Source: Entomortierella parvispora E1425 (lineage: Eukaryota > Fungi > Mortierellomycota). From it: a stretch of 64,000 nt of DNA. Location: the NCBI GenBank assembly GCA_020891255.1, contig BQFW01000015.1:434001-498000 (forward strand), in the 5' to 3' direction. A program made the translations under genes and the position numbers. The notes beneath the pieces were generated by a model, which did not search any database, was not told the origin of the DNA, and worked only from the letters and a program-made list of their open reading frames with translations. Position 1 is the first letter of the stretch. Every line of letters starts with the position of its first letter. This document shows, piece by piece, positions 7,950-35,989 of the stretch.

Positions 7950-8237
7950 GGTTGCAGTGATGAGTCGTATAGTATAGAGTGATCCTGTTCCTTCCTGAAT
8001 GAATAAAGAATGAATAAAGAATGAATGAAGAGAGAAAGAAAGAAAGAATGAGCGAAACACAAAGCCGATCGCGTTCTCCCCCCGAGAACAAAAGGCAAGA
8101 AAAAGGGTGACTGTCCTTTCTCTCCGCTCGAGCGCCACTGCGCCCGTCTTTCTTTCTTTTATTCGAATAGCCCTTTGCCCATGACTTTGCCCCCTTCTCA
8201 TTCATTGCATTCGCGTCACTCTCTCCATTCAACCACC
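7950..8237. promoter_or_regulatory. Probable bidirectional promoter, NDUFAF2-like / NTA1
   Basis: 288-bp gap between divergent start codons. Confidence 0.5.
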
Positions 8238-9890
8238 ATGAAGATCTGTATGCAACAACAACGCTGGGACATACTCTGAACTAGAGACACTTATGATAGA
8301 CAAGAGGCCTACCACTCAAGAGAAACAGCGCCTCATCACCACTCTTCTCCCCTGTTTTTGATCCTAGGCTGTCTCCAGCTTGAACCCAAGCTGGGTCAAG
8401 TCCAGGAGAACATCAACCATGCTACCGACATGATTGCCCAGTAAGAGAAGATTTGGATATTACTTCTTTTAGATCAAAGCACACACTTCTGGTGGAAAAA
8501 GAAAAACAAGAATCTGATGCTAATCTTTTGATCCTTTATTTCCACGGCAATAGCTTAAAGCCCGAGGACGTGGATGTGCTTGTCCTGCCCGAAATGGCCT
8601 TTACAGGTAAAGATCGCCGACCTCTTGTCTTCATCTTTTTTAAATTCACGGACGTTATCATTTGGAAAACGAGTAGAGAATCCGAATCGGGGCGTTACCA
8701 CTGGTGAAAGCGTTCTCAATAGGTCAAACAAAAGCTGAATTCTAAAACCTCCTTCTTTCTCTTCTTTTCTCCTAAGGCTACGTGTTCAAGAGCAAGGACC
8801 ATATCAGACCTTACCTCGAGGATTCTAAAACTGGACCTAGCGTCACCTGGGCCATGGCTCAAGGTAACTGCACCCTCAATACCTTTGAGATTTAGTTTCG
8901 ACTTTTTTTTTTTTTTTTTGTATCGTTTTTAGATTCTTGATTTCAACATCTGGCGGACCACAATCTTTCTCGCCTCTAACCTATTTCATCCTCTTCTTAA
9001 TCTCTTTAGCCATCCGACTCAATGCTCATGTAGTCGTCGGCTACCCCGAGAGGCGTGTCGTCAACCCCTCTGACCCCACCAAGGAACAATTCTACAACTC
9101 GATCGCCTTTGTCTCCCCCACGGGCCAACTCTTGACCACCTACGCCAAACATTTCCTTTACTACACGGACGAGAACTGGGCGGAAGAAGGTCCCGCTTTC
9201 GAATCGATTCATGTCCCCGGATTAGGACAAGTCGGCTTCGGGATTTGCATGGATGTGAACCCGTACCGGTTCCAAAGTGCGTTCCAGGAAATGGAATTCT
9301 CGACATTTCACTTGAAGCACAAATCCGACTTGATCCTGTGCTCCATGGCTTGGAACAAGGGTGAGGAGGCGCCCAAGAAGGAAAAGGTCCTTCCAAAACC
9401 GAAATCGGAAAAGTCGAAAGCAAGACTTGCAAAAGCAAAAGCGCAAGGGGAACTTGGCGAGGGCGAAGGCGTGGCTGAAGATGAGGATGATGACGAGGAT
9501 TGGGAAGATGAGGAGAGTGATGAAGAGACTACGGAAGAAAAGGCCTTGCGATTGGAAGAAGAGGCACAGAAACTCCGGTACGAGACGATCCAGTACTGGG
9601 CCTTGAGAATGTCGCCCTTTTATGACCAAAAGTCGAAACCGCCCCACAAAGCCCATATTGTCATCGCCAACCGAATCGGCACGGAGGATGGTAAGACAAG
9701 AACCTATTTCCCAGTTCTATGGTTCGTTTATGGCTTTCTCAGATTTTAACCGCCTCTCTCCTGTCTCTCTTCTCCTACAGGAAATTTGTTTGTGGGCAGC
9801 TCGTGTGTCATGCATTTGACTTCAGAAGGACCTCGGCTTTGCGGAGTGCTGTCCGCAAACACAGAGGGCGTCCTGAAGGTTCACACCTGA
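8238..9890 (+). CDS. NTA1: Protein N-terminal amidase (nitrilase / carbon-nitrogen hydrolase fold)
   Basis: The catalytic triad is present in LVLPEMAFTG (E), YAKHFLYYTDENWA (K) and GICMDVNPY (C). Also LCSMAW and IANRIGTEDG|NLFVGSSCV. Confidence 0.9.
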
Positions 9891-10037: not shown

Positions 10038-13000
10038 CTATGAGGTTCCAGATGGGACAGGGTCAAAGGAAGAGAGAGTGGAGGAAGGTATATTAACACT
10101 CTCAAGGCTCGTGTTATTGTTCTCCCAACCAACAATCAATGGGGTCTCATTCCCAACAACACTTTCGCCTGCACGAGAGACCCGCTCGCCGTCGTGGCCA
10201 GTGACGCTTTGGTCGTCATCCTCGTCGCTATCATCGTCCTCTGTCTCTGTATTTTCGTCCCGGTCATTCGACACAAACGAGGATCCCTCGTCCAAGGCAC
10301 AGCCTACAACGTCGCCACTGATCGAAATCAGGGCATAACCTTGGTTTTTGACGCTCTCTTGGAAAAAACTCTCGTCCACGCGCAGACCTACAATCGCATC
10401 GCCTCCCAAAGCAGCCACATGGGAACGCGCCACGGCCTGGATCTCCATCAGGAACACATGCACAAATCCTCCCATGCCGCTCGACACTGTCGTGTCGTGC
10501 AAAATATGAGTTTCCTTGACAAAGTGAAGGGAGAGCTTGCCCAAGTAACGCGTGGGGGTTCGTCCAGGAATAAACGAGAGTGGGGTCATCTCGATAAAGG
10601 GTCGATCAACCGGCATCATCGGAAGTTGGGCCACTCGAATACTCGATTCATCCATCTGGCCAGATCGACTCATGGCGGAGGACACAGATTGCTGACGGTC
10701 ACGATTGTGCTGGTTCTGGAGTCCCGGCCGCGTCGTCTGAACTGCCAGGACATTGTCACTAATATAGCTGCCGTTGGAGGAGGTGGGTCGATGGACTGGA
10801 CTCTGTGGAGGTACCAGACTAGAACTGGACACGGTAGACGACTGCATATTTTGCTCCTGAGGGCGATATCCCATCTGACGGCTGGCTTGGCTATCCTGCG
10901 GTGTTGTTGGCGCGCTATCTGCCATTCCTAATCGGTTGTAGCGCTCCTTGACAGGGGTCGTAGGTGCAGTAGCAGAAGTTGAGCCAGTGACAGTCTCGCT
11001 CGATTGTTCGGCAGAAAAAGGGTGTGTAGATTGTAACCGGCTATTGATGTCTGTAAGAGTCGTTGCTGGCGTGGTCGATTGTGAAGAAATGGGCGTCTGT
11101 CGTGGCGACTCTGTGACTTGACACTCATCCATCTGGAATACCATTGCATCTTCCACACTTCTTGCTGGTCGCTCAGGTGTAGTGCGTGACTGTGACAAGC
11201 CATTTTCAGACTCTGACCGAGAGTGGCTCGAAGAGAGCGCAGCTGATCCAGGAACAGACCTCCATGGTGAAAGAGTAATGGGAACACCCAGTGGTTCCAA
11301 ACTATCCAGTTGCCTCTGCTGTCCCAGTGCCACAGCTGTAAGCTGGATCTGGACCTCATTGGCGCGAGGAAGTTGAATGTTATAAGTGATACCGGCGAGG
11401 ACACAATCTGTAAAGTATGAGAGTCGGAATCGAAGATCCTCGTAGATAGATCGGAACAAGGCAGCCAGTTGTCGGTTAGGGTGGTGAGAGACAATGTTGA
11501 TGTGGCCCTGCTTGACAGTTGTGATCAAATGGGCATTGTCGGGTATCATTGGGTCCGTGCTCACGAAATACGGGTGGTTCGGCAGCGTTTCTGTGCTGCA
11601 CAGTAAAAAGCCATCCGTGAAGACCGGGTCCAATAAAACCGCCATGAGATCCTCATCCGCATCATCATCAATCTGAATGACAACATTCGTCTGATAATTG
11701 TCCTTCTCTGCCTCGTCTTCGGAATCCGAACTCGATCCAGAACTGTCGTCGTCGGGATTATTGCCGTCAATGAGAGCTGCCATGGATCCTGGGTGGCTCT
11801 CTTCTGATGCACGGATCTTGGCGGCCTCCAGGTTTTGACGATTTGTTTCCGAGAGCTCCATAATCTTGCGCTGCATTTCCAACAACTTCTTATCCTCTTC
11901 ATCAATGACGCCCAAGTTTCGTGAGATTCGTAGTGCTGGGGGGGTTGGGAGGGCTGAGAGATACATGGCAGTACCGCAGGCCACTGCTACAATCAAGGTA
12001 TCGCCAACGGTGAGCTGGAATCGGAGGCCAAAGATGGCATTCAGACCATGGATCTTGAGCTTGTACATTAGCTGTCGGTGCAAATCGTACTCGACGAACG
12101 GGATCGCGTCACTGACAATGGATGCGTTGGATTCTCCATCTTTCCGCTTCTTGGGACGACATACGTGAGCTTCCACGAATGCACTTTGACCAACAACGCC
12201 CAACTCTGCTGGAGGTTCAACCGTGCTAAGCAGAATCTCGGGAACATACTTCTTTTTGCATTTTTGGCATTTGACCAAACTCATTGGGAACGGTGACGAC
12301 TTGCGATGGAAAGGGATATGACACATTCGGCAGGCTAAAAAAATATATGCGAGAATATATGTTAGTATGGAGAATAGATCCAAAGTGAAAATGAGTGATC
12401 AGCCCCCCTTGGGAAAAGTACCTGAAGGCTGCTTCCGTTTGCTCTTCCGTTTGGCGAGCATATCCATCCACTGCTGCTCTTTCAAAGAATTCTGGAAACT
12501 GGCCCTGGTACCACCAATAGACGAAGAAAGGTTGTCGACGGGGTTGTCCACATATGATCGACAGATGCTTCCAGACCTCGACAAGTTTCTGCCTGCTTCA
12601 AAGAACCCAGGTGTAAAGGCCGTCATGTCCAGATTGGCTGCTGTTCCGACCGCAGAGAGGACAATCAACTCGTCATTGATAGTCGCCGCCTCCTGGTATC
12701 CGATAATATGAGAACAGCCCAGCACTCGAGCATGAGACTTGATCTCATCACGCAGCTCATCCCACCACGTCTCTCTGGTCTCGACATCGTCGTTTTCAAT
12801 CAACTTGACAGATCTGGCACTGACAATTCCTCCGAGGTTGAAGACTGTTCCTGGAGGAAACTCGTGTAGCGTAAAAATTTGTTGTTCCAGATATTTGTAG
12901 TTGTTGATGCTGTTCTTGGCGCCGCTGGCTATTGACGGTGCAGAATCCGTGCTGCTGCTGCTCGAGCTCGAGAAACTAGAGCCTCTCCTTCTCGCCGTTG

Positions 13001-14025
13001 ATGCTTGCGCCACATTTTCTGGTCCTGCTCCAACGTTGATGGGGTTTGTGGCTTGCTCTGGGTTCATGACCGATGTGAATATATCCTCCGTGTTCAACTC
13101 GTGCAGCGTAATAGCTTGGGGTCTGTTGTCAGAGAATTGTGGCGGTGAGGTATTTGAAACCATGGCGATCTTGACAGCCGTTCCTACAGCTCTTGCTGTG
13201 ATAGCATGCTCCTCGCTTTCAAGATCGAAACATTGTTGGTATCCCAGGACCGCATTGCCTCCCATGTCCAAGGTCTCCTTGCCCAACAGACGGCGCAGTT
13301 GTCCCGAGAGTCGGAAGAGCAATCTTTGACGGGCCTCATTCGAAGATCGTTGGGTTCTGAAACTGTCACTCCAATGGTACTCTGGATCATCCTCATTGAC
13401 AATCGCATCCACGAATCCATGCATGGCTACAATCTGATATCCTGCTGGCAACGATGTGGTGGAGAAGAACATGATGCCGGCAGAGGAATCCTTGAAAGGG
13501 TTCACATCTCCAAAGAACTGAAGTTTGACCTGAACATTGACTTCGCCTCGTACACCTCGGATCGTGTCGTAGATAGGAAACCACCCAGCAATCTGCCAAG
13601 GCGAGTTCACGGGGAGCAGTGGGTTGAGGTCGATAAAAACAGAGCCAACAGAGTCGTTCGCAGTAATGGCGTCGTAGTCCAGCACCTTGAGTTCTAGGGG
13701 CTCATTTTGCAGATCCGCGTCATCCGTGACCTCGAATCGAAAGTCCTGTAATGAAAGGAGTAGGTCATGAGTTAGTCCAACAAGCGAGGACAAATGCAAA
13801 GAGCCAAGCAAAGGTTCGCATGTTCATGTATGCAGTCCAGCATGAGCATGGTGCTAGACTTGCCTCGTTCCAAACAGGGTTCAATGTCTTGCGGCATACG
13901 GTCGTGCGCTGGGCCTCAAAGTCAGCAAAGCGCACCTCCACATAGGCATCGGTGAGGTCGGAGGCCTTGTCCATGACAGGCAGGTCCCTTGCACCGATGA
14001 CTCTAATCTTTAGGATACATGGCAT
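10038..14025 (-). CDS. C2CD5: C2 domain-containing protein 5-like (N-terminal C2 plus YbjQ-like repeats)
   Basis: MPCILKIRVIGARDLPVMDKASDLTDAYVEVRF..KTLNPVWNE|DFRFEV..LQNEPLELKVLDYD; RQRLLFRLSG; RETWWDELRDEIKSHA; FVEYDLHRQLMYKLKIHGLNAIFGLR. Confidence 0.88.
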
Positions 14026-28801: not shown

Positions 28802-30641
28802 TGTGTGAAGGGGTAGAGATGTGTTGTAGATTGGAGAGTGCTTTTGGGAGTTGGGGTTCGTTGCAAAGAGTGCTGTTGGTGTGTGTGCAAGAAGGGGAAT
28901 CGAGATCGACTGAGGAAAGAAAGGAAAAAAAGAAAAAAAGAGGCGAACAGACCACCTTTTATCTAGGGTTTCTTAATTTCAGTAAACCGAGGTGAAGGAA
29001 GGACTGGCTTTGGGGGGGCCAGGCAAAAGAGTGAGCGAACAACCAGAGGATGAGAGCCACAGAGGGTGAAGATGGAAGGGATCAATTGCTCCAGATATGG
29101 AATCTAGGTACTGTACTATGGAGTGTTGTTGAGTACTTGGGTGGCAATTGAGAGCAGTAGGGAAGAGGGGCCGAGATTGTTCAACGGGGAAGTGCTGGCA
29201 AGAAAGAAAAGAAGAAAGAACGAGAAAATGAAAGAGTGCGAACGAGTGCAGTGTCAAGGACGTAGAAAAGGGCCGAGAGGACGGGGGGAGGCTGCCGCTC
29301 TTTATAGCCCCCGCTGACTTGTGGGCGCAGAGAAGGGGAAGGGAACGAGCGAGAGAAGAATAGATTCCTTGGGTCTCCCCCCTGTTGTGCGTCTGTCCGC
29401 CTGCCTGTCTGCCTGTCTGTTTCTGTCCCTCTGTGCGCGCGTGCTGCTATTTTTAAAAATAAAAAAATCTTCAGTCAGTCACTTGTGCTCCGCCCATGTG
29501 CCGGGCTTGCTCACCCGCTCCTTCCGCTCCCCCTCGTTCTGACCTGCCCTGGCCGTGGTTGCGTCTCTCTTTCTCTCTGTCAATGACGAGCTGGGGTGGC
29601 GGCACTGCCGCCCTGGTTTCTTTTTGAATGATGCACTTTGAACTATCAGCATCGCCGCTCTACTTTGCCATCGGTTTGACTGTCTATCTGTCAGGACCGC
29701 AGCAGCACACCATTGTCGTACAGCACCATGTCGCATTCGATCAAAGGTTTTTTTTATCTTTTTTTTTTTTTTTTTTTTTTTCCACACCGATAAACTGTCG
29801 ACTACAGTATGATGCAAACCTCACCGTGAGAACTAGCTCGGCCGCGCCCATTGCAATGGCGCCGCCCTATCTTTTGCATGCAGGTATAGCTAAGTCTATT
29901 CATGCTGAGGTATGATTTTTTTTTTCTCTTGCATCCGCGGGTTTTCTTCTTCCCCTGCCTGCTGGGAAGGAACATGAAAAAGGTGGATAAGGACCTGAGG
30001 AAGGCGCGGACATGGAAAGGAACAAGGGATTCCTCTGCACAGTTCGCCCTTTTTGCATGTCAAGAAATGCAAAAAAAAAAACGCTAGACAGATGTGGTGT
30101 TCGTGCGCACCGACTGTTCACCTCGGCACTCCTCTGCTCTGCTGGCCCCCTATTCCGAAGACTATTCCGGATCAAGCTGGCAATGTCCACCTGTCCAGTT
30201 AAAAGGTATCTCCTTCCATTTTTTCACTTGTTGAATAATGTAGGGGTGTTAGGGGCCTCTCTCTTCTTCCTGGACCCGCGGTAGACAAAAGGGACCTTTC
30301 TCGGAGAGTAAAAAGAGATCTTTCGTCGGCGGGAAAGGTTTCTTTCTCCAGGAATATATGTTGTTCCTTTTTTTTCACACGTAGCAAGGGCTACATTGTC
30401 ATGTATTCTTTTTACATTTCTCAACGATCAACAATTCCGCCGTTCTCATTTGTATCTTTGTCAGTCTGTCCATAAACACTGGCGCTCAGACTACGGACGG
30501 ATATGGACGAACGGAAGCTTTCTGGGTGGTTGTTCCTTTTGGTTTTTTTTTGCCCCCCAACGTGACCATGTCCCAAGAACCTTCAGCTAGACGCAGTAAA
30601 CAGGTCAAGGGACAAACCTGTGTGGCACTGTCCCTTTCTGG

Positions 30642-30675
<34 letters not shown>

Positions 30676-31292
30676 GTTGAGGGCGTCGACCAAAATAGCG
30701 ATCGCCCGCCGCCTCACCACCGCAGGACAGGGTTGCACAAAGTTCAAGCCTGTTTGTAAACAGGGACGCGAACAGAAGTGAGGTTGCAGCGGCGCGTTAT
30801 CGGCGGGCCGCCAAAGATTCTTTTTCCTCCCACGAGTCTCACCCCCAAACTCAATTCCCTCCATGGCATCTGGAACCTGCCGGGAACCACCGAAAAAAAA
30901 GGAAAGAAACTAGAAAAGCACGATGACGAAGTAGCTCTCCTTTTTGAGTTTTTCTTCCGCTGGGCGTCAACAGCCACGGCGGGAAGATTTCTTTGGGATG
31001 TTGCATTGTTCGAGTGCAATCGAATTCGTTTTGTCCGTTACTGCCCCAAGGATTCACTTTAACAGGGCGAGCTGCAGAATCCTCCGTAAAAGAAACTACC
31101 ACAGACGATAGCACAAACTTCACCGACGATGGCACAGACATTTACTTGTTCCGTCACTTTTGATAGCGAGTGGCGGACAACTGAAAATGACCGCAGTTCC
31201 ATATTCAACCTGCAGTTCAATGTCGCCTCGTTTTCACTTCTCCTCGGGTTTTGTCGCCGGCGCCCAGAATGAAGACCGTCACAGTGTGGTAG

Positions 31293-31438
31293 ACAAAGCA
31301 AAAGGCAAAGCAAAGAGACGGAGCAAAAGGCAAAGTAAAAAGACAGAGCAAGGAGACAGAGCAAAAGGTAAGGCAAATGCACAGCAAAAGGACAGCAAAA
31401 GGACAGCAAAAGGCAAAGCGAAAGGCAAAGCAAAAGGG
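31293..31438. repeat. Degenerate GCAAAAGGCAAA-type purine-rich minisatellite
   Basis: Repeated AAAGGCAAAG / CAAAAGGACAG units seen directly. They generate the KAKGKAK ORF 31160..31606. Confidence 0.8.
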
Positions 31439-31830
31439 GAACAGTGCACCTGGTCATACATTACCCCTATCCATCGACTCTTGAATTGTTCCAATTCCCT
31501 CGTCTTTTCCTTTCGCTTTCAAACTTTTGTCTTCATCATCCTGCCCCCCTCCACAGCTGGTTTCGTTTTCATATCAACCCTTTATCTCTCCATATCATTA
31601 TTTTGATAACATTCACTAGTGAAAGGTACAGCGCAATTCTATCATGATTATCTTCTGGCGACAACTCGCACTTTCAATGTGGAGCGGGTCCACCTGTGAA
31701 TTGCAGCCGTCGCTCTTTTTTTTGGGGGGGGCGGGGGGGAACTTCGTAGTCCAACAGCCTCTCTCTGGAGTTGGCCTCTGGTACCAGTAAACTGATAAGC
31801 CGTATTGTTCAATCTGACGTAGACTGCAGC

Positions 31831-34800
31831 ATGTATTCTGCAGAGTTTTATAACTGGTGCAAAATTGAACTGTTGCTTGTAAAGGCGGCAGAATGTCTGA
31901 GAAAGACGTTTGAGCAATGTTGGCAACGCAAGTACAAGGTGGCGTGGAGCAACACGCCTGAGTGTGGACAAAACTTCACGAACAGCGTAGGGTTCAGCGT
32001 ATACCGACACGTAGGCAAGATTCAGAAGGAGTATCTGGAAGGCGGCGACATCAGAAAATGGGACTTGACGATTTTCAACGCTATTTTCATCATGACCGAT
32101 CTCAACAGAGGCGCGGTGTTCCAAGCCAATCTTAAACGCCTGATGCCTATCCGAAATAGCATGGCCCACCATTCAGACAAGAATATCGGTTCTCAAGAGT
32201 ACCAGCAGTATTGGAGTGAGCTGAAAGGCATCTTGTTGGTCCTAGGCGCTACGGAGGAAGAGCTGGACGACATTATACATTCGCGTTCGAGCGACTCCAA
32301 GACATTTATTATGACCGAAAACGTTAAAAGGTCGATCGAACTCAAGCTTGAAGGCAACAAACTGTTGAAAGAGCAGAAGTTCCAAATGGCAGTGACCAAA
32401 TACACCGACGCCATCACCCTGCCGGGCATTTCAGACGCAGACCTTTCGATTTTGTACTCCAACAGGTCGTTTTGCTATCTAAAGCTAGGCCAAAAAACCC
32501 AAGCCCTGGAGGACGCCAAGCTATCTAAACGCCTAAACCCCGAATATGTCAAGGCGCACATCAGGCTCGGAAAGGCGTATGAGGCGCTGGAAAGGTACGA
32601 CAAGGCCATCAAAAGTTTCGACAAAGCACTTGGCCTAGATACGAACAATGACGAAATACGGCAGATGCGATCGGACGCCAGAAAACTACAGGGGCTACGA
32701 GAGCGAGACAACGACGAAACCATCAAAAATCTGAATGTGAAAAGTAGACAACAGTTCAAAGAGTTGAAGAACAGGGACCAACTCAGAAAGATGATGTTCG
32801 ACTACGATCCTGCACTGGAGCATGTCTGGGCCGGCCACGAATACCGCGACGATCAAAATTACCTCAAGGCTGTAGAGTGCTACAAAAAGGCAGCCGCCAT
32901 GCGAAGTGCCGAAGGCATGTACAATCTGGCTCTGCTCATGATCAACGGCCAAGGCATCAACAGAGACTACCAACAGGCGTGCAAACTACTGCTGGAGGTC
33001 TCCAAGTTCGATCCATTCGACAAAAATAAGATTCCTGTCGTTGGCGTGAAGGAGGCCGAACACTCCATTGCATTGGGCTACCATGAAGGCAGCATTATGG
33101 AAAAAAGTGCTGAGATGGCTGTGGTATGGTACGAGAAGGCGATTTCGCACCAAAACGGGATGTCGGCAAACAACCTGGCACTTATGTATTTCAACGGAGA
33201 TGGTGTGACCAAGGACTTCAAACAGGCCGAGAAGCTATTTTTGTGTGCGCTGAACTATGGCGATCCGAACGCCATGGACAACCTTGTCAACCTCTATGTG
33301 GCGTCCGGAAACATCAACAAGGCTGAGAAGTGGAATGAGAAATCCAAAAAGCAGGGCTCGAAGCTTGCACGCGACAGAGAGCACGCAATTGCCCAAATGG
33401 CACTAAAGAGCAATGCGGACATTGCGGAAGTGATTGATTGGGAAAAGGAGCTCAACCTGCCGTTCGAAAACATGACTATCCGTGAGAGAATTTTCCGCAA
33501 ACTTTCATACGAACACCCAGACAAACCGGACATCTTGGAAACGATGAATGATTTGGAGAACCTCAAAAACAAATCAGAACGTGTGTCGCCCACCACAATC
33601 ACAAATGGGTACAGGTACGATCTGGAGGTGCTGGCCAAGCGCAAAGACAAGTCAGAGTTTAGCAACCGGATGTACCGAGCTGTGCGGAGCTTTATGGAGG
33701 CCCTGGACATATTTCAAAGCTTTAAAAGGCGCGCCGTTGTTGTTCTCGACAACGATTCAAGGCTGTTCATTAGCCGGCTGGCCATGTGCTACAAGCTAGA
33801 GCACTTTGTCGGCTCCATGCCGATGGAAATCCGCGAGGTCATCCGAAAGCACGTTCTTCTACTTTTGTCATATAGCGACCGCGCTGTAAAAAACAGCGAA
33901 AACATCGACGAGCTGGAGTTTAACCAGGACTGCAGAATCTGCCACGCGGTCCTGAATATGCAGTCCGACGAAAACATCAACTTTCTGACAGAATGCATCA
34001 AGAAGTATCCCAACAACAAGTTCTTCTTCGAGATTCGGGGGTGTCTGTACAACTTCAAGGACAAAAACGAAGATGCATTGCGAGACTTCAATCGTATTGA
34101 TGAGATTTCGAAAAACGATGTGGACAACGTATATCACAAAGCCGCCACGTTCAAGCTTATGAACCGGATGAACCAAGCGACAGACGCATACAACAAATTC
34201 CTATCTATTGCGTCTGAGGACCACAGAAAGGTGCCCGAAACCCATTACTCATTGGGGGTTTGTAGCATGATGAGTAGAAACAAGGACACCATCGCGCAGC
34301 AGGACACCATCGCGCAGCACTATGAACGGGGGTTGAAAGCAGAAGAAAAGCAGATTCCGTTCCTGTTGCCGTACGAGTCGACGAGCAAAGAGATGCTTGA
34401 GCTGATGTTGCGCACTCTTGGAGGGCGCAGTAAGGGCAAGCAAAATCCAGTCTTCAAAAAGCCTGTCGTTAAGCTGGTTGATCCGTTTAGGAAAGACCTG
34501 ATTGTGAGCCACAGACGAGGCATCAACGACTTCAGCAAGATCATGAGCAGCCAAGGAGACTTCCAGGTCAATTTCACAGCAAAGCCTTCGAAAAGCCAGA
34601 GCGTGCCACTGTCGTTGGTTGGACTGAAACCCATATATCTGAGCGACATCGACCCCACTGCAGACCATGTGCTGGACGGTTTTGTGCTGGAGCTCACACT
34701 TATCACGGCGCCATTCAACAACAACATGTCGATTTCCTTTGTTGCAGAAGATAACAACTCGAATGTGCAGCGGGTCAGTCTGTACAACTGCGAAAAACAC

Positions 34801-35058
34801 ACCCTGGCGATTGGATCAAAGATTAGCGTCATCAATCCATATCTTCGAACCGCCATGGACGGCAAACCCCTCATCAGAGTCGACGATCCAAACTCTGTCA
34901 TTGTCTCTCCGCACCAAATCGTGGACATGTGTCACAATTGCGGAAAAGGTGGATCCAAGTTTTCTTGCGCGAAGTGCAAACGGGCTAAATACTGTTCGAA
35001 GGAGTGCCAGGTCTTGGACTGGAAGGAATATAGTCACAAACTGATTTGCGATTCGTAG
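31831..35058 (+). CDS. Intronless multidomain protein: DZIP3-type HEPN, TPR x3, SEL1 repeats, TPR, beta-rich (OB-like) domain, MYND zinc finger
   Basis: 1,095-codon ORF (first ATG 31831). HEPN-like: GDIRKWDLTIF..IRNSMAH..QEYQQYWSELKGILLVLG. TPR: KLEGNKLL..LYSNRSFCYLKL..YVKAHIRLGKAY. SEL1: AEGMYNLALLMINGQGINRDYQQA, MSANNLALMYFNGDGVTKDFKQA. MYND: CHNC..CAKCKRAKYCSKECQVLDWKEYSHKLIC. Confidence 0.9.
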   Translation: MYSAEFYNWCKIELLLVKAAECLRKTFEQCWQRKYKVAWSNTPECGQNFTNSVGFSVYRHVGKIQKEYLEGGDIRKWDLTIFNAIFIMTDLNRGAVFQANLKRLMPIRNSMAHHSDKNIGSQEYQQYWSELKGILLVLGATEEELDDIIHSRSSDSKTFIMTENVKRSIELKLEGNKLLKEQKFQMAVTKYTDAITLPGISDADLSILYSNRSFCYLKLGQKTQALEDAKLSKRLNPEYVKAHIRLGKAYEALERYDKAIKSFDKALGLDTNNDEIRQMRSDARKLQGLRERDNDETIKNLNVKSRQQFKELKNRDQLRKMMFDYDPALEHVWAGHEYRDDQNYLKAVECYKKAAAMRSAEGMYNLALLMINGQGINRDYQQACKLLLEVSKFDPFDKNKIPVVGVKEAEHSIALGYHEGSIMEKSAEMAVVWYEKAISHQNGMSANNLALMYFNGDGVTKDFKQAEKLFLCALNYGDPNAMDNLVNLYVASGNINKAEKWNEKSKKQGSKLARDREHAIAQMALKSNADIAEVIDWEKELNLPFENMTIRERIFRKLSYEHPDKPDILETMNDLENLKNKSERVSPTTITNGYRYDLEVLAKRKDKSEFSNRMYRAVRSFMEALDIFQSFKRRAVVVLDNDSRLFISRLAMCYKLEHFVGSMPMEIREVIRKHVLLLLSYSDRAVKNSENIDELEFNQDCRICHAVLNMQSDENINFLTECIKKYPNNKFFFEIRGCLYNFKDKNEDALRDFNRIDEISKNDVDNVYHKAATFKLMNRMNQATDAYNKFLSIASEDHRKVPETHYSLGVCSMMSRNKDTIAQQDTIAQHYERGLKAEEKQIPFLLPYESTSKEMLELMLRTLGGRSKGKQNPVFKKPVVKLVDPFRKDLIVSHRRGINDFSKIMSSQGDFQVNFTAKPSKSQSVPLSLVGLKPIYLSDIDPTADHVLDGFVLELTLITAPFNNNMSISFVAEDNNSNVQRVSLYNCEKHTLAIGSKISVINPYLRTAMDGKPLIRVDDPNSVIVSPHQIVDMCHNCGKGGSKFSCAKCKRAKYCSKECQVLDWKEYSHKLICDS
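34283..34318 (+). repeat. In-frame 18-bp tandem duplication (AGGACACCATCGCGCAGC x2) giving DTIAQQDTIAQH
   Basis: Seen directly. Confidence 0.95.
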
Positions 35059-35989
35059 TGACCAGACATGGTGCTCCGAAGCATGTTGGTTCAAAGTTGA
35101 TGGCGGGGCAAGTTGGGGAAGAATAAATAGCAGTATACTCGTTAACAGGGCACGAACGCGAGCTCTAGTTGGTTTCCAACTATGGAGTCGACCATGACAA
35201 TCTTGCACATTTGATGAAGGGCTGGACATGCTATGCAGGTAGATACACGGGATGGGGTAAAATGGTCACAGAAAAAAAAAGTGCAAGCTGATCAACAAGT
35301 CTGATCCGAGGAAACGGAAACACACTGGAATCACCACAATGGATGCTGCAGGACTTTCCATTGTTGACAGAGCCCCCTCCATTGAACGTAGGCAGCCGGC
35401 CAATGGTGCCTAATGTGACTGATAAGGGAATGGTAGACGAAAGAAGCTTTCCAACAGCAGCGAGGAAAACTGTGGCTGATGACAGGAGGCATCTAAAAGA
35501 TATAGAAGAGCAAAGCCAGTCGCCGCCCTCACCATCACTGCTGCTACCTCACAAGAGAGCTCCTCACCCTTCAAGAAGAAAAAAAAATCACCCCTTGTCA
35601 CCTTAATGCAAATAAACGTGCGGATTAAGAATCAGTTCCAACCCCACACGGGCGGAGCCACGCGGTCTGAGCGCACTCGTTTGGGCGAAGTCGCTTGTCT
35701 CGGAATGGAAGTGCCTGTGCCTGTTCCTATTCCTGGGACAGACATGAATGAATGAATGCATGAATGCCGCAGCCTCGGGGGGAATCTCCATTCAGACGAG
35801 GCAATGCAGTGCACTCTTGTCATTCTTTCGACATGTCGGCTTTCACAGGGCGTGGGAAAATGGCTTTTCAGCTTATGCGTGCGTGCGAAATGGAGCTGAT
35901 CCCACATGAACATTGACCTTCATGTCGCCATTGTTGTTGCTCATTGACAGCGGGTGCATTCTTTGGGACCAAGAGTAGTTTCATTGTTC

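Follow-up and report, generated by a model that had tools for sequence, protein, structure and literature searches.

Comparison with described systems

The closest described relatives of the gene considered here are the DZIP3/hRUL138-type HEPN proteins (Pfam PF18738), in which an N-terminal HEPN domain with an Rx4H motif is followed directly by TPR repeats, so that a predicted ribonuclease (RNase) or RNA-binding effector is joined to protein-interaction modules. Domains of this type are widespread in invertebrate immune-like gene families, and we know of no DZIP3-type HEPN protein with demonstrated RNase activity. A survey of 2013 assigned the family mainly to the animal lineage, with human DZIP3 and TTC3 and expansions in cnidarians, molluscs and Capsaspora, and recorded fusions to TPR, RING, ankyrin, CARD, NACHT, Death and LRR modules (PMC3710099). 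Here we describe a fungal protein of this kind from Entomortierella parvispora E1425, encoded at positions 31831-35058 of a 64,000-nucleotide stretch of contig 15 (BQFW01000015.1), the whole of which is referred to below as the window. It differs from the DZIP3 type in having none of the RING, ankyrin, CARD, NACHT, Death or LRR modules, in carrying Sel1 repeats, a TTC5-like module and a MYND zinc finger, and in being fungal.

Other described proteins resemble it in part. The prokaryotic defence RNases with HEPN domains (Csm6, AbiD/AbiF, Cas13 and HepS) have the same fold and the same R-N-x3-H motif, and Csm6 and AbiF are the best structural matches of the N-terminal domain in the PDB. There the RNase is switched on by dimerization or in response to a ligand. 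The present protein, by contrast, is a eukaryotic single chain with a presumed repeat sensor, and has no CARF domain, guide RNA or operon partner. Hop/STIP1, CHIP, SGT, RPAP3 and SPAG1 share with it a three-repeat TPR domain containing five clamp residues (K172, N176, N211, K241 and R245 here), but the clamp domain is single in our protein and is accompanied by no DP/STI1, U-box or other co-chaperone module. TTC5 (Strap), in which a TPR solenoid leads into an OB fold at the C-terminus, is the top structural match for residues 560-1075. Identity is about 13%, and the module here, unlike TTC5, is part of a 1075-residue protein that also has HEPN, clamp TPR, Sel1 and MYND parts. Finally, the Spok-type killer/resistance elements of Podospora are likewise single large genes with a nuclease-type domain that occupy varied loci, with unexpectedly similar copies in different species; there is no relationship in sequence or domains, sexual cycles are rarely seen in Mortierellaceae, and the likeness is one of analogy only. 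What is known, then, is the DZIP3-HEPN-TPR kind of protein, and what is new is the combination with Sel1, TTC5-like and MYND parts in an uncharacterised family, together with the evolutionary behaviour of the gene.

The open reading frame extends from 31771 to 35058 on the forward strand and is open throughout. Its first ATG, at 31831, opens a single-exon coding sequence (31831..35058, forward strand) of 1075 codons plus stop, with no internal stop codon and no sign of an intron, and the product is 100% identical to a database protein (P0001). The possibility that the frame is an artefact and not a gene was ruled out by the intact 3.2-kb frame in all species and by ratios of non-synonymous to synonymous divergence (dN/dS) below 1. 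Genome searches show the gene to be single-copy in its own 38.9-Mb genome, where they found no paralogue of the N-terminal or the C-terminal modules; it provides both the sole HEPN_DZIP3 match and the sole TTC5_OB match of that genome. The explanation that we favour, and that as a whole we hold to be probable, is of a functional single-exon gene encoding a cytosolic protein with several domains, from an as yet uncharacterised family of eukaryotes.

A preliminary description of the locus, made from the letters of the window, had given the domain order as HEPN-TPR-SEL1-TPR-OB-MYND, which Pfam and the structural models bear out, and had named no characterised fungal protein with such an architecture; literature searches returned no paper on one. 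The candidate new system that it proposed is not a one-off of fungi, as the family spans about 20 Mortierellaceae and has full-length members in several animal groups and an amoeba. Its own reservation, that the architecture might belong to a widespread and already characterised family, proved half justified: the family is widespread in databases, but no paper characterising it was found. The chaperone-tail clamp, the resemblance to TTC5 and the apparent behaviour of the gene as a horizontally moving cassette had escaped it.

A DZIP3-type HEPN domain

The HEPN domain is predicted to occupy residues 1-152 (31831..32286, forward strand) on the evidence of Pfam PF18738, AlphaFold, VIA-align and the ESM Atlas. 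The motifs listed in the preliminary description were all located where it had placed them: W..TP..G..F corresponds to WSNTPECGQNF at residues 39-49, GD..KWDLT lies in GGDIRKWDLT at 71-80, IRNSMAH is found at 107-113 (nucleotides 32149-32169) and EY..YW..L..IL..LG corresponds to EYQQYWSELKGILLVLG at 123-139. Within the third of these lies R108-N-S-M-A-H113 (32152..32169, forward strand), the Rx4H catalytic signature of HEPN RNases, assigned from its conservation in the family and its position in the model.

When the whole protein is searched against Pfam, HEPN_DZIP3 matches residues 98-149 with an E-value of 8.7e-6 and 26.0 bits, against a gathering cut-off of 27; in a six-frame search of the genome the same region scores 28.6 bits. 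The family is matched by all 12 full-length relatives at E ≤ 0.01 (best E-value 1e-8), and some of them lie clearly above the cut-off, with scores such as 62.7, 35.9 and 35.3 bits. R108, N109, H113, W77 and D78 are invariant in the same 12 proteins. Since their identity is as low as 30% and no higher than 79%, this conservation of the motif means that the HEPN match is more than chance. A search of 1.84 billion representatives extends the observation, with RNxxxH kept in 119 of 147 homologous domains (81%).

Structural comparisons point in the same direction. The AlphaFold model of residues 1-170, built on 15 relatives, is all-helical, with a predicted local distance difference test score (pLDDT) of 88.8 and a predicted template-modelling score (pTM) of 0.83. 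In it R108-N109-x3-H113 forms the end of the third helix (residues 95-112) and the start of the loop that follows, and the HEPN survey puts the Rx4-6H motif at the same helix-end position (PMC3710099). An exhaustive VIA search with the N-terminal domain ranks the HEPN domain of Csm6 first (4rgp_B; Z 8.9 over 117 residues, root-mean-square deviation 3.5) and an AbiF dimer second (8vz6_B; Z 7.8 over 142 residues), with further HEPN proteins in the list (Csm6 6tug, sacsin 3o10, MtlR 6kcr, HepS 9oik and 1wwp). Searches of the ESM Atlas connect the domain, at TM values of 0.76-0.84 over 156-166 residues, to clusters of DZIP3-like HEPN domains in which 78-95% of members carry PF18738. The helical up-down fold of HEPN domains is thus seen in the AlphaFold model, in the Atlas and with VIA.

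We conclude from these profile matches and predicted structures that the N-terminal part of the protein forms a HEPN domain of the DZIP3 type, its R-N-x3-H catalytic signature intact, in line with the similarity to HEPN_DZIP3 that had been proposed from the motifs. A structural kinship between DZIP3-type and prokaryotic domains has been reported independently, the HEPN domains of Cas13an, an ancestral Cas13, being similar to those of DZIP3, Swt1 and AbiD/F (PMC12165695, 2024). By analogy with these enzymes we would expect, if by a narrow balance, that the domain has RNase activity.

The predicted chaperone clamp and the Sel1 repeats

The second part of the protein, at residues 166-290 (32326..32700, forward strand), is a three-repeat TPR domain that its PDB sequence matches mark as being of the carboxylate-clamp kind; Pfam finds TPR_1, TPR_2 and TPR_8 between residues 160 and 290. 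The PDB sequences matched are those of SPAG1, STIP1/Hop, RPAP3, CHIP, SGT, Tom70 and PP5, with E-values from 1e-32 to 1e-10. The five clamp residues named above align with residues 8, 12, 43, 73 and 77 of the first TPR domain (TPR1) of human STIP1, which we take to form the two-carboxylate clamp for the EEVD tails of Hsp70 and Hsp90, and in the alignment the set of Lys, Asn, Asn, Lys and Arg is complete. Judged from this alignment, binding of the EEVD tails of Hsp70/Hsp90 by the domain seems, on the whole, likely.

Relatives of the protein already stand in the databases under such names as ‘Stress-induced-phosphoprotein 1’ or ‘MYND-type domain-containing protein’. The former name arises because the first TPR block is clamp-like and similar to Hop. 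It is a mislabel: Hop/STIP1 is marked by the domains TPR1, TPR2A and TPR2B together with DP/STI1 domains, while here the clamp-type TPR domain at residues 166-290 is the only one and Pfam finds no STI1/DP domain.

The same TPR block suggests another way of looking at the whole protein, as a non-catalytic co-chaperone or adaptor whose clamp docks on Hsp70/Hsp90 and whose repeats and MYND finger recruit clients, while the HEPN domain merely binds RNA or protein. With its full set of clamp residues and its strong similarity to Hop, CHIP, SGT and RPAP3, the block fits such a role well, and some HEPN families are indeed non-catalytic (PMC3710099). Invariance of R-N-x3-H across relatives that are only 30-79% identical favours catalysis, however, and a single clamp domain with no STI1/DP domain found by Pfam is not the usual equipment of a Hop-like protein. 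With the distribution and evolution of the gene also taken into account (see below), we regard a purely adaptor function as quite unlikely.

Sel1 repeats follow the clamp domain, at residues 336-515 (32836..33375, forward strand). Pfam Sel1 scores 60.4 bits in three stretches, and the block matches the Sel1-repeat proteins 6ok3 and 4bwr in the PDB.

The TTC5-like module and the MYND finger

The AlphaFold model of residues 560-1075 (pLDDT 78.9) consists of a helical solenoid, then a beta domain, then a zinc finger. The solenoid at residues 598-862 (33622..34416, forward strand), delimited with AlphaFold and Foldseek, is the second TPR-like one of the protein and makes up the TPR part of the TTC5-like module. 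The beta domain at residues 931-1030 (34621..34920, forward strand) has a predicted OB fold like that of TTC5_OB, on the evidence of Pfam PF16669, the strands of the model and Foldseek. With residues 560-1075 as query, the four best Foldseek matches are full-length TTC5/Strap structures (4abn, 8bpo and 6t59), with E-values of 3e-9 to 6e-7 over 468-498 columns; 6t59 and 8bpo are structures of TTC5 bound to the ribosome. The isolated OB domain of TTC5 (2xvs) is matched at an E-value of 7e-5, and TTC5 clusters are also among the Atlas matches. The model and Foldseek thus agree on the arrangement found in TTC5, a TPR solenoid with an OB fold at its C-terminal end.

Pfam TTC5_OB matches residues 963-1029 with an E-value of 1.5e-5 and 25.1 bits, which does not reach the cut-off of 30, and the 29.0 bits obtained in the genome search are also below it; 7 of the 12 full-length relatives match at E ≤ 0.01. 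A sequence profile of the C-terminal half searched against the PDB gives generic TPR and MYND matches, with TTC5 not among the best 60. A second look at the C-terminal model with VIA returned generic TPR proteins at Z 13-15, from which TTC5 was not separated. Because the TTC5_OB score is below threshold, and because neither the profile search nor VIA brings out TTC5, we describe the module as TTC5-like and refrain from assigning the protein to TTC5 itself.

The TPR-OB module of TTC5 itself reads the nascent chain of tubulin at the ribosome (PMC10403363). It could be imagined, therefore, that the E. parvispora protein is a co-translational regulator of the TTC5 type with a built-in nuclease, which would recognise a specific nascent chain at the ribosome exit and let its HEPN domain cut the translated mRNA directly, replacing the SCAPER/CCR4-NOT route. 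The Foldseek ranking, including the ribosome-bound structures, the TTC5 clusters in the Atlas and the sole TTC5_OB match of the genome agree with this idea, as does the existence of a described mechanism (PMC10403363). Set against them are the identity of only about 13%, too low for the functional residues to be aligned reliably, the sub-threshold OB match, the absence of TTC5 from the best 60 profile matches and a VIA list filled by generic TPR proteins. A horizontally moving gene of patchy occurrence is, moreover, hard to reconcile with a core regulator of tubulin, and the idea strikes us as highly improbable.

The protein ends in a MYND zinc finger at residues 1034-1073 (34930..35049, forward strand), identified by Pfam, by its conserved ligands and by PDB profile matches. 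Pfam zf-MYND (PF01753) covers these residues with 37.8 bits against a cut-off of 22.7; C1034, C1037, C1046, C1049, C1055, C1059, H1069 and C1073 are each at least 90% conserved; and the profile matches are to the fingers of SMYD2, DEAF1 and CBFA2T1. As a separate observation, the Atlas contains 447-residue MYND-type proteins of Mucoromycota whose predicted shape resembles residues 564-949 (TM 0.47 and 0.53). These may be stand-alone relatives of the C-terminal module.

Distribution of the family

A full-length search places orthologues of 65-79% identity, with 100% of the length covered, in about 20 Mortierellaceae belonging to the genera Mortierella, Linnemannia, Podila, Entomortierella, Dissophora, Gryganskiella, Modicella and Actinomortierella. 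The gene is present in every Mortierellaceae species that turned up in the search, as an adaptor with a general role would be, but the same searches found no copy in fungi outside the Mortierellaceae, which speaks against such a role. Rotaria, Hydra and environmental contigs contain relatives of 29-35% identity that align over 94-100% of the length, and Brachionus has a shorter protein that matches 60% of it. A search with the N-terminal domain yields 177 representatives at E ≤ 0.001, and those examined have the HEPN-TPR-Sel1-...-MYND layout; they include proteins of Adineta (a rotifer), Bradysia (a fungus gnat), Orchesella (a springtail), Strigamia (a centipede) and Echinamoeba (an amoeba).

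In the family tree the supported groups comprise the arthropods, the rotifers, Hydra with environmental sequences, and the Mortierellaceae with one environmental sequence. Given these groups and the relatives in animals and an amoeba, the sequences indicate that the architecture is either old or widely exchanged, and is not a fungal invention.

The springtail Orchesella dallaii stands out in having at least nine divergent copies (locus L017 and the other proteins P0149, P0163, P0164, P0185, P0210, P0223, P0241, P0257 and P0259), no two of which reach 50% identity. Several share one 7.5-Mb contig, which points to a lineage-specific expansion. A MYND protein of 515 residues adjoins one of the copies.

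Synonymous divergence and changing genomic location

The window was compared with four other loci, L003 of M. alpina, L006 of L. zychae, L007 of L. gamsii and L008 of M. claussenii. In each of the five the gene has different neighbours, and no gene order is common to the window and any of the other four. Orthologues of the neighbours in L. gamsii sit on contig 2 of the E. parvispora genome, while the gene itself is on contig 15. The gene consists of a single exon in all five Mortierellaceae and also in Rotaria, Hydra, Orchesella and one environmental contig; the Bradysia homologue has about 70 extra bases.

The five copies are more alike at silent sites than their genomes are. Across the ten pairs of species the amino-acid identity is 73-87%, the synonymous divergence (dS) 0.12-0.53 and dN/dS 0.30-0.55, and between the window and L. 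gamsii the third base is the same in 88% of conserved codons. For the control genes Mito_carr, HlyIII and DnaJ, compared between the same two species, dS is 1.4-1.8 or not computable and the third base is the same in 41-60%. A further control is an exon of about 750 codons from a C2CD5-like gene (EMPS_10810; window 10041-13823, reverse strand), whose product has C2 and several YbjQ-like domains. It was compared among the window, M. alpina, M. claussenii and L. zychae, the last two represented by the same assemblies as loci L008 and L006. At 72-77% identity, dS was not computable in six of six pairs, and the third base was the same in 43-45%. Extreme codon bias does not account for the low dS, since the third-position GC of the gene, 0.64, falls within the host range of 0.50-0.64.

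Several observations were made on the genes used or considered as controls. The C2CD5-like gene is conserved across early-diverging fungi and animals. The genes next to the M. alpina copy were unusable for rates, one not having been found in the window genome and the other belonging to a large F-box/LRR family with at least 53 six-frame matches in E. parvispora. The E. parvispora counterparts of the DnaJ and HlyIII neighbours of L. gamsii (contig 2, 2059286-2060176 and 2062382-2062919) show in-frame TGA codons in the six-frame match. At 650 kb on contig 15 there is another HlyIII copy, better than the first; the pattern may reflect pseudogenes, introns or duplication of a segment.

Similarity is not confined to the coding sequence. 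In the window, about 540 nucleotides upstream and 88 nucleotides downstream, through the AATAAA signal, can be aligned across species, and there homology stops. The conserved upstream region (31291..31830, forward strand), made up of a microsatellite and then the presumed promoter and 5′ untranslated region, is 70-93% identical to its counterparts at the M. alpina, L. gamsii, M. claussenii and L. zychae loci. The conserved 3′ untranslated region through AATAAA (35059..35145, forward strand) is 82-87% identical to those of the four other species in blastn comparisons.

Because dS is low against saturated controls, the neighbours differ and the flanks can be aligned, we think it likely, on this comparison of sequences, that a cassette made up of the gene, some 0.5 kb of upstream sequence and about 90 nucleotides of downstream sequence spread horizontally between lineages, long after these had diverged, and came to rest at different loci. 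With dS of 0.12-0.53 against a saturated background and such varied locations, the gene ranks as a strong candidate for having been transferred recently between eukaryotes. The gene tree of the Mortierellaceae is star-like with genus labels scattered, an observation to be given little weight, as the identities of the control gene also depart from the genus names.

The protein evolves faster than a typical housekeeping protein. By region, dN/dS is 0.26-0.41 in the folded domains and 0.75-1.4 in the linkers, and the values for the folded domains mean that the whole protein, the HEPN domain included, is maintained by selection. An overall dN/dS of 0.3-0.55 and a shifting location are unlike a core chaperone cofactor, which again tells against the adaptor. 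This behaviour as a cassette suggests a better fit to a conflict, defence or selfish gene than to a housekeeping gene.

Flanking rRNA fragments and probable mobility

The segment shared by M. alpina, L. gamsii and M. claussenii is longer, extending over about 5 kb, with inverted repeats on either side. Terminal inverted repeats in these species were considered as transposon ends and identified instead, with Rfam, as degraded fragments of the 3′ part of 28S ribosomal RNA (rRNA), lying far from any rDNA array. The fragments are at 8434-9013 (reverse) and 13388-13519 (forward) in L003 of M. alpina, at 8217-8766 (reverse) in L008 of M. claussenii and at 13393-13538 (forward) in L007 of L. gamsii. 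No such 28S fragments were found in the window or at the L. zychae locus.

A gene that moves in this manner could be the payload of a selfish element, such as a single-protein toxin/antidote or drive gene or a retro-copied cassette, persisting because it spreads and not through any benefit to the host. Low synonymous divergence against a saturated background, a different locus in each species, the single exon in fungi, Rotaria, Hydra and Orchesella, the inverted 28S fragments that bracket the gene in three species, and homology that ends just past AATAAA are all features that such an element might show. Yet there is one copy in the genome; Pfam detects neither a transposase nor a reverse transcriptase or recombinase in its product; and neither terminal repeats nor a target-site duplication or poly(A) remnant is seen at the window copy. 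A single copy without these hallmarks was accordingly not classed as a transposon or retro-copy. Purifying selection on all folded domains also fits a gene that is useful to its host. Taking these points together, a purely selfish payload appears very unlikely to us.

Possible function

The preliminary description had pictured the repeats as sensing a ligand and licensing RNA cleavage, in an immune or stress role, and a more specific version of that idea can now be put forward. The effector would be the N-terminal DZIP3-type HEPN domain with its R-N-x3-H motif, which, by analogy with Csm6, AbiF and Cas13, may cleave RNA without a metal once two HEPN domains pair. The TPR clamp would hold the EEVD tails of Hsp70/Hsp90. 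The Sel1 repeats, the TTC5-like TPR and OB parts and the MYND finger would act as protein-binding modules that place the protein on its partners, among which those of the TTC5-like module and MYND finger might include a ribosome-nascent-chain complex. Contacts with partners could then gate the pairing of HEPN domains and hence the cleavage of RNA. Such gating is put forward tentatively.

A role in defence or conflict is suggested by what is known of the HEPN family, by the springtail expansion and by the horizontal spread of the gene; we see it as a fair suspicion that still falls short of being probable. More speculative, and as a package unlikely, is the picture of a family of single-exon genes that moves horizontally among soil and freshwater eukaryotes (Mortierellaceae, rotifers, springtails, Hydra and amoebae) and whose self-contained effector docks on chaperones or, through its TTC5-like module, on ribosome-nascent-chain complexes and then cuts RNA with its HEPN domain. 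It would correspond, in eukaryotes, to the mobile single-gene HEPN systems that serve bacteria in defence or abortive infection, or else be a selfish element of the toxin type.

Several findings weigh against the explanation favoured here. The HEPN_DZIP3 and TTC5_OB scores of this protein alone are just under the Pfam cut-offs. Of the structural checks that had been suggested for the N-terminal domain, the AlphaFold monomer came out confident but Foldseek returned nothing significant against the PDB, and the VIA values of Z 8-9 are modest for a helical bundle. The E. parvispora gene is not expanded, and its product has no NACHT, Death or other classic immune module. Viral contigs scanned with the family alignment contained no relatives. 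The window copy also shows none of the transposase, terminal repeats (apart from the A/T runs described below), target-site duplication or poly(A) by which a transposon or retro-copy is known.

A single-copy, intron-free fungal member of the family offers a simple entry point for testing the RNase activity of DZIP3-type HEPN domains. The fusion of a HEPN domain to a chaperone clamp and a TTC5-like module also suggests a link between the status of protein folding or translation and the cleavage of RNA.

Other features of the window

The microsatellite of the upstream region, (GCAAAAG/GCAAAGG)n at about 31291-31440, lies some 400-540 nucleotides before the start codon and is common to at least three of the four other loci, with differing lengths. 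It gives rise to spurious low-complexity open reading frames on both strands. The antisense and overlapping frames reported at 31831-35058 are likewise mechanical entries of the list of open reading frames.

Further upstream, a T run at 29741-29784 and an A run at 30639-30680, about 860 nucleotides apart, form an inverted A/T pair. A similar A/T run precedes the gene in M. claussenii (L008, 7562-7588), a likeness that may be due to chance in low-complexity sequence. The genes within about 20 kb are ordinary fungal ones, encoding TSR2, WW, G-patch, membrane transporter, C2CD5-like and VTC proteins.

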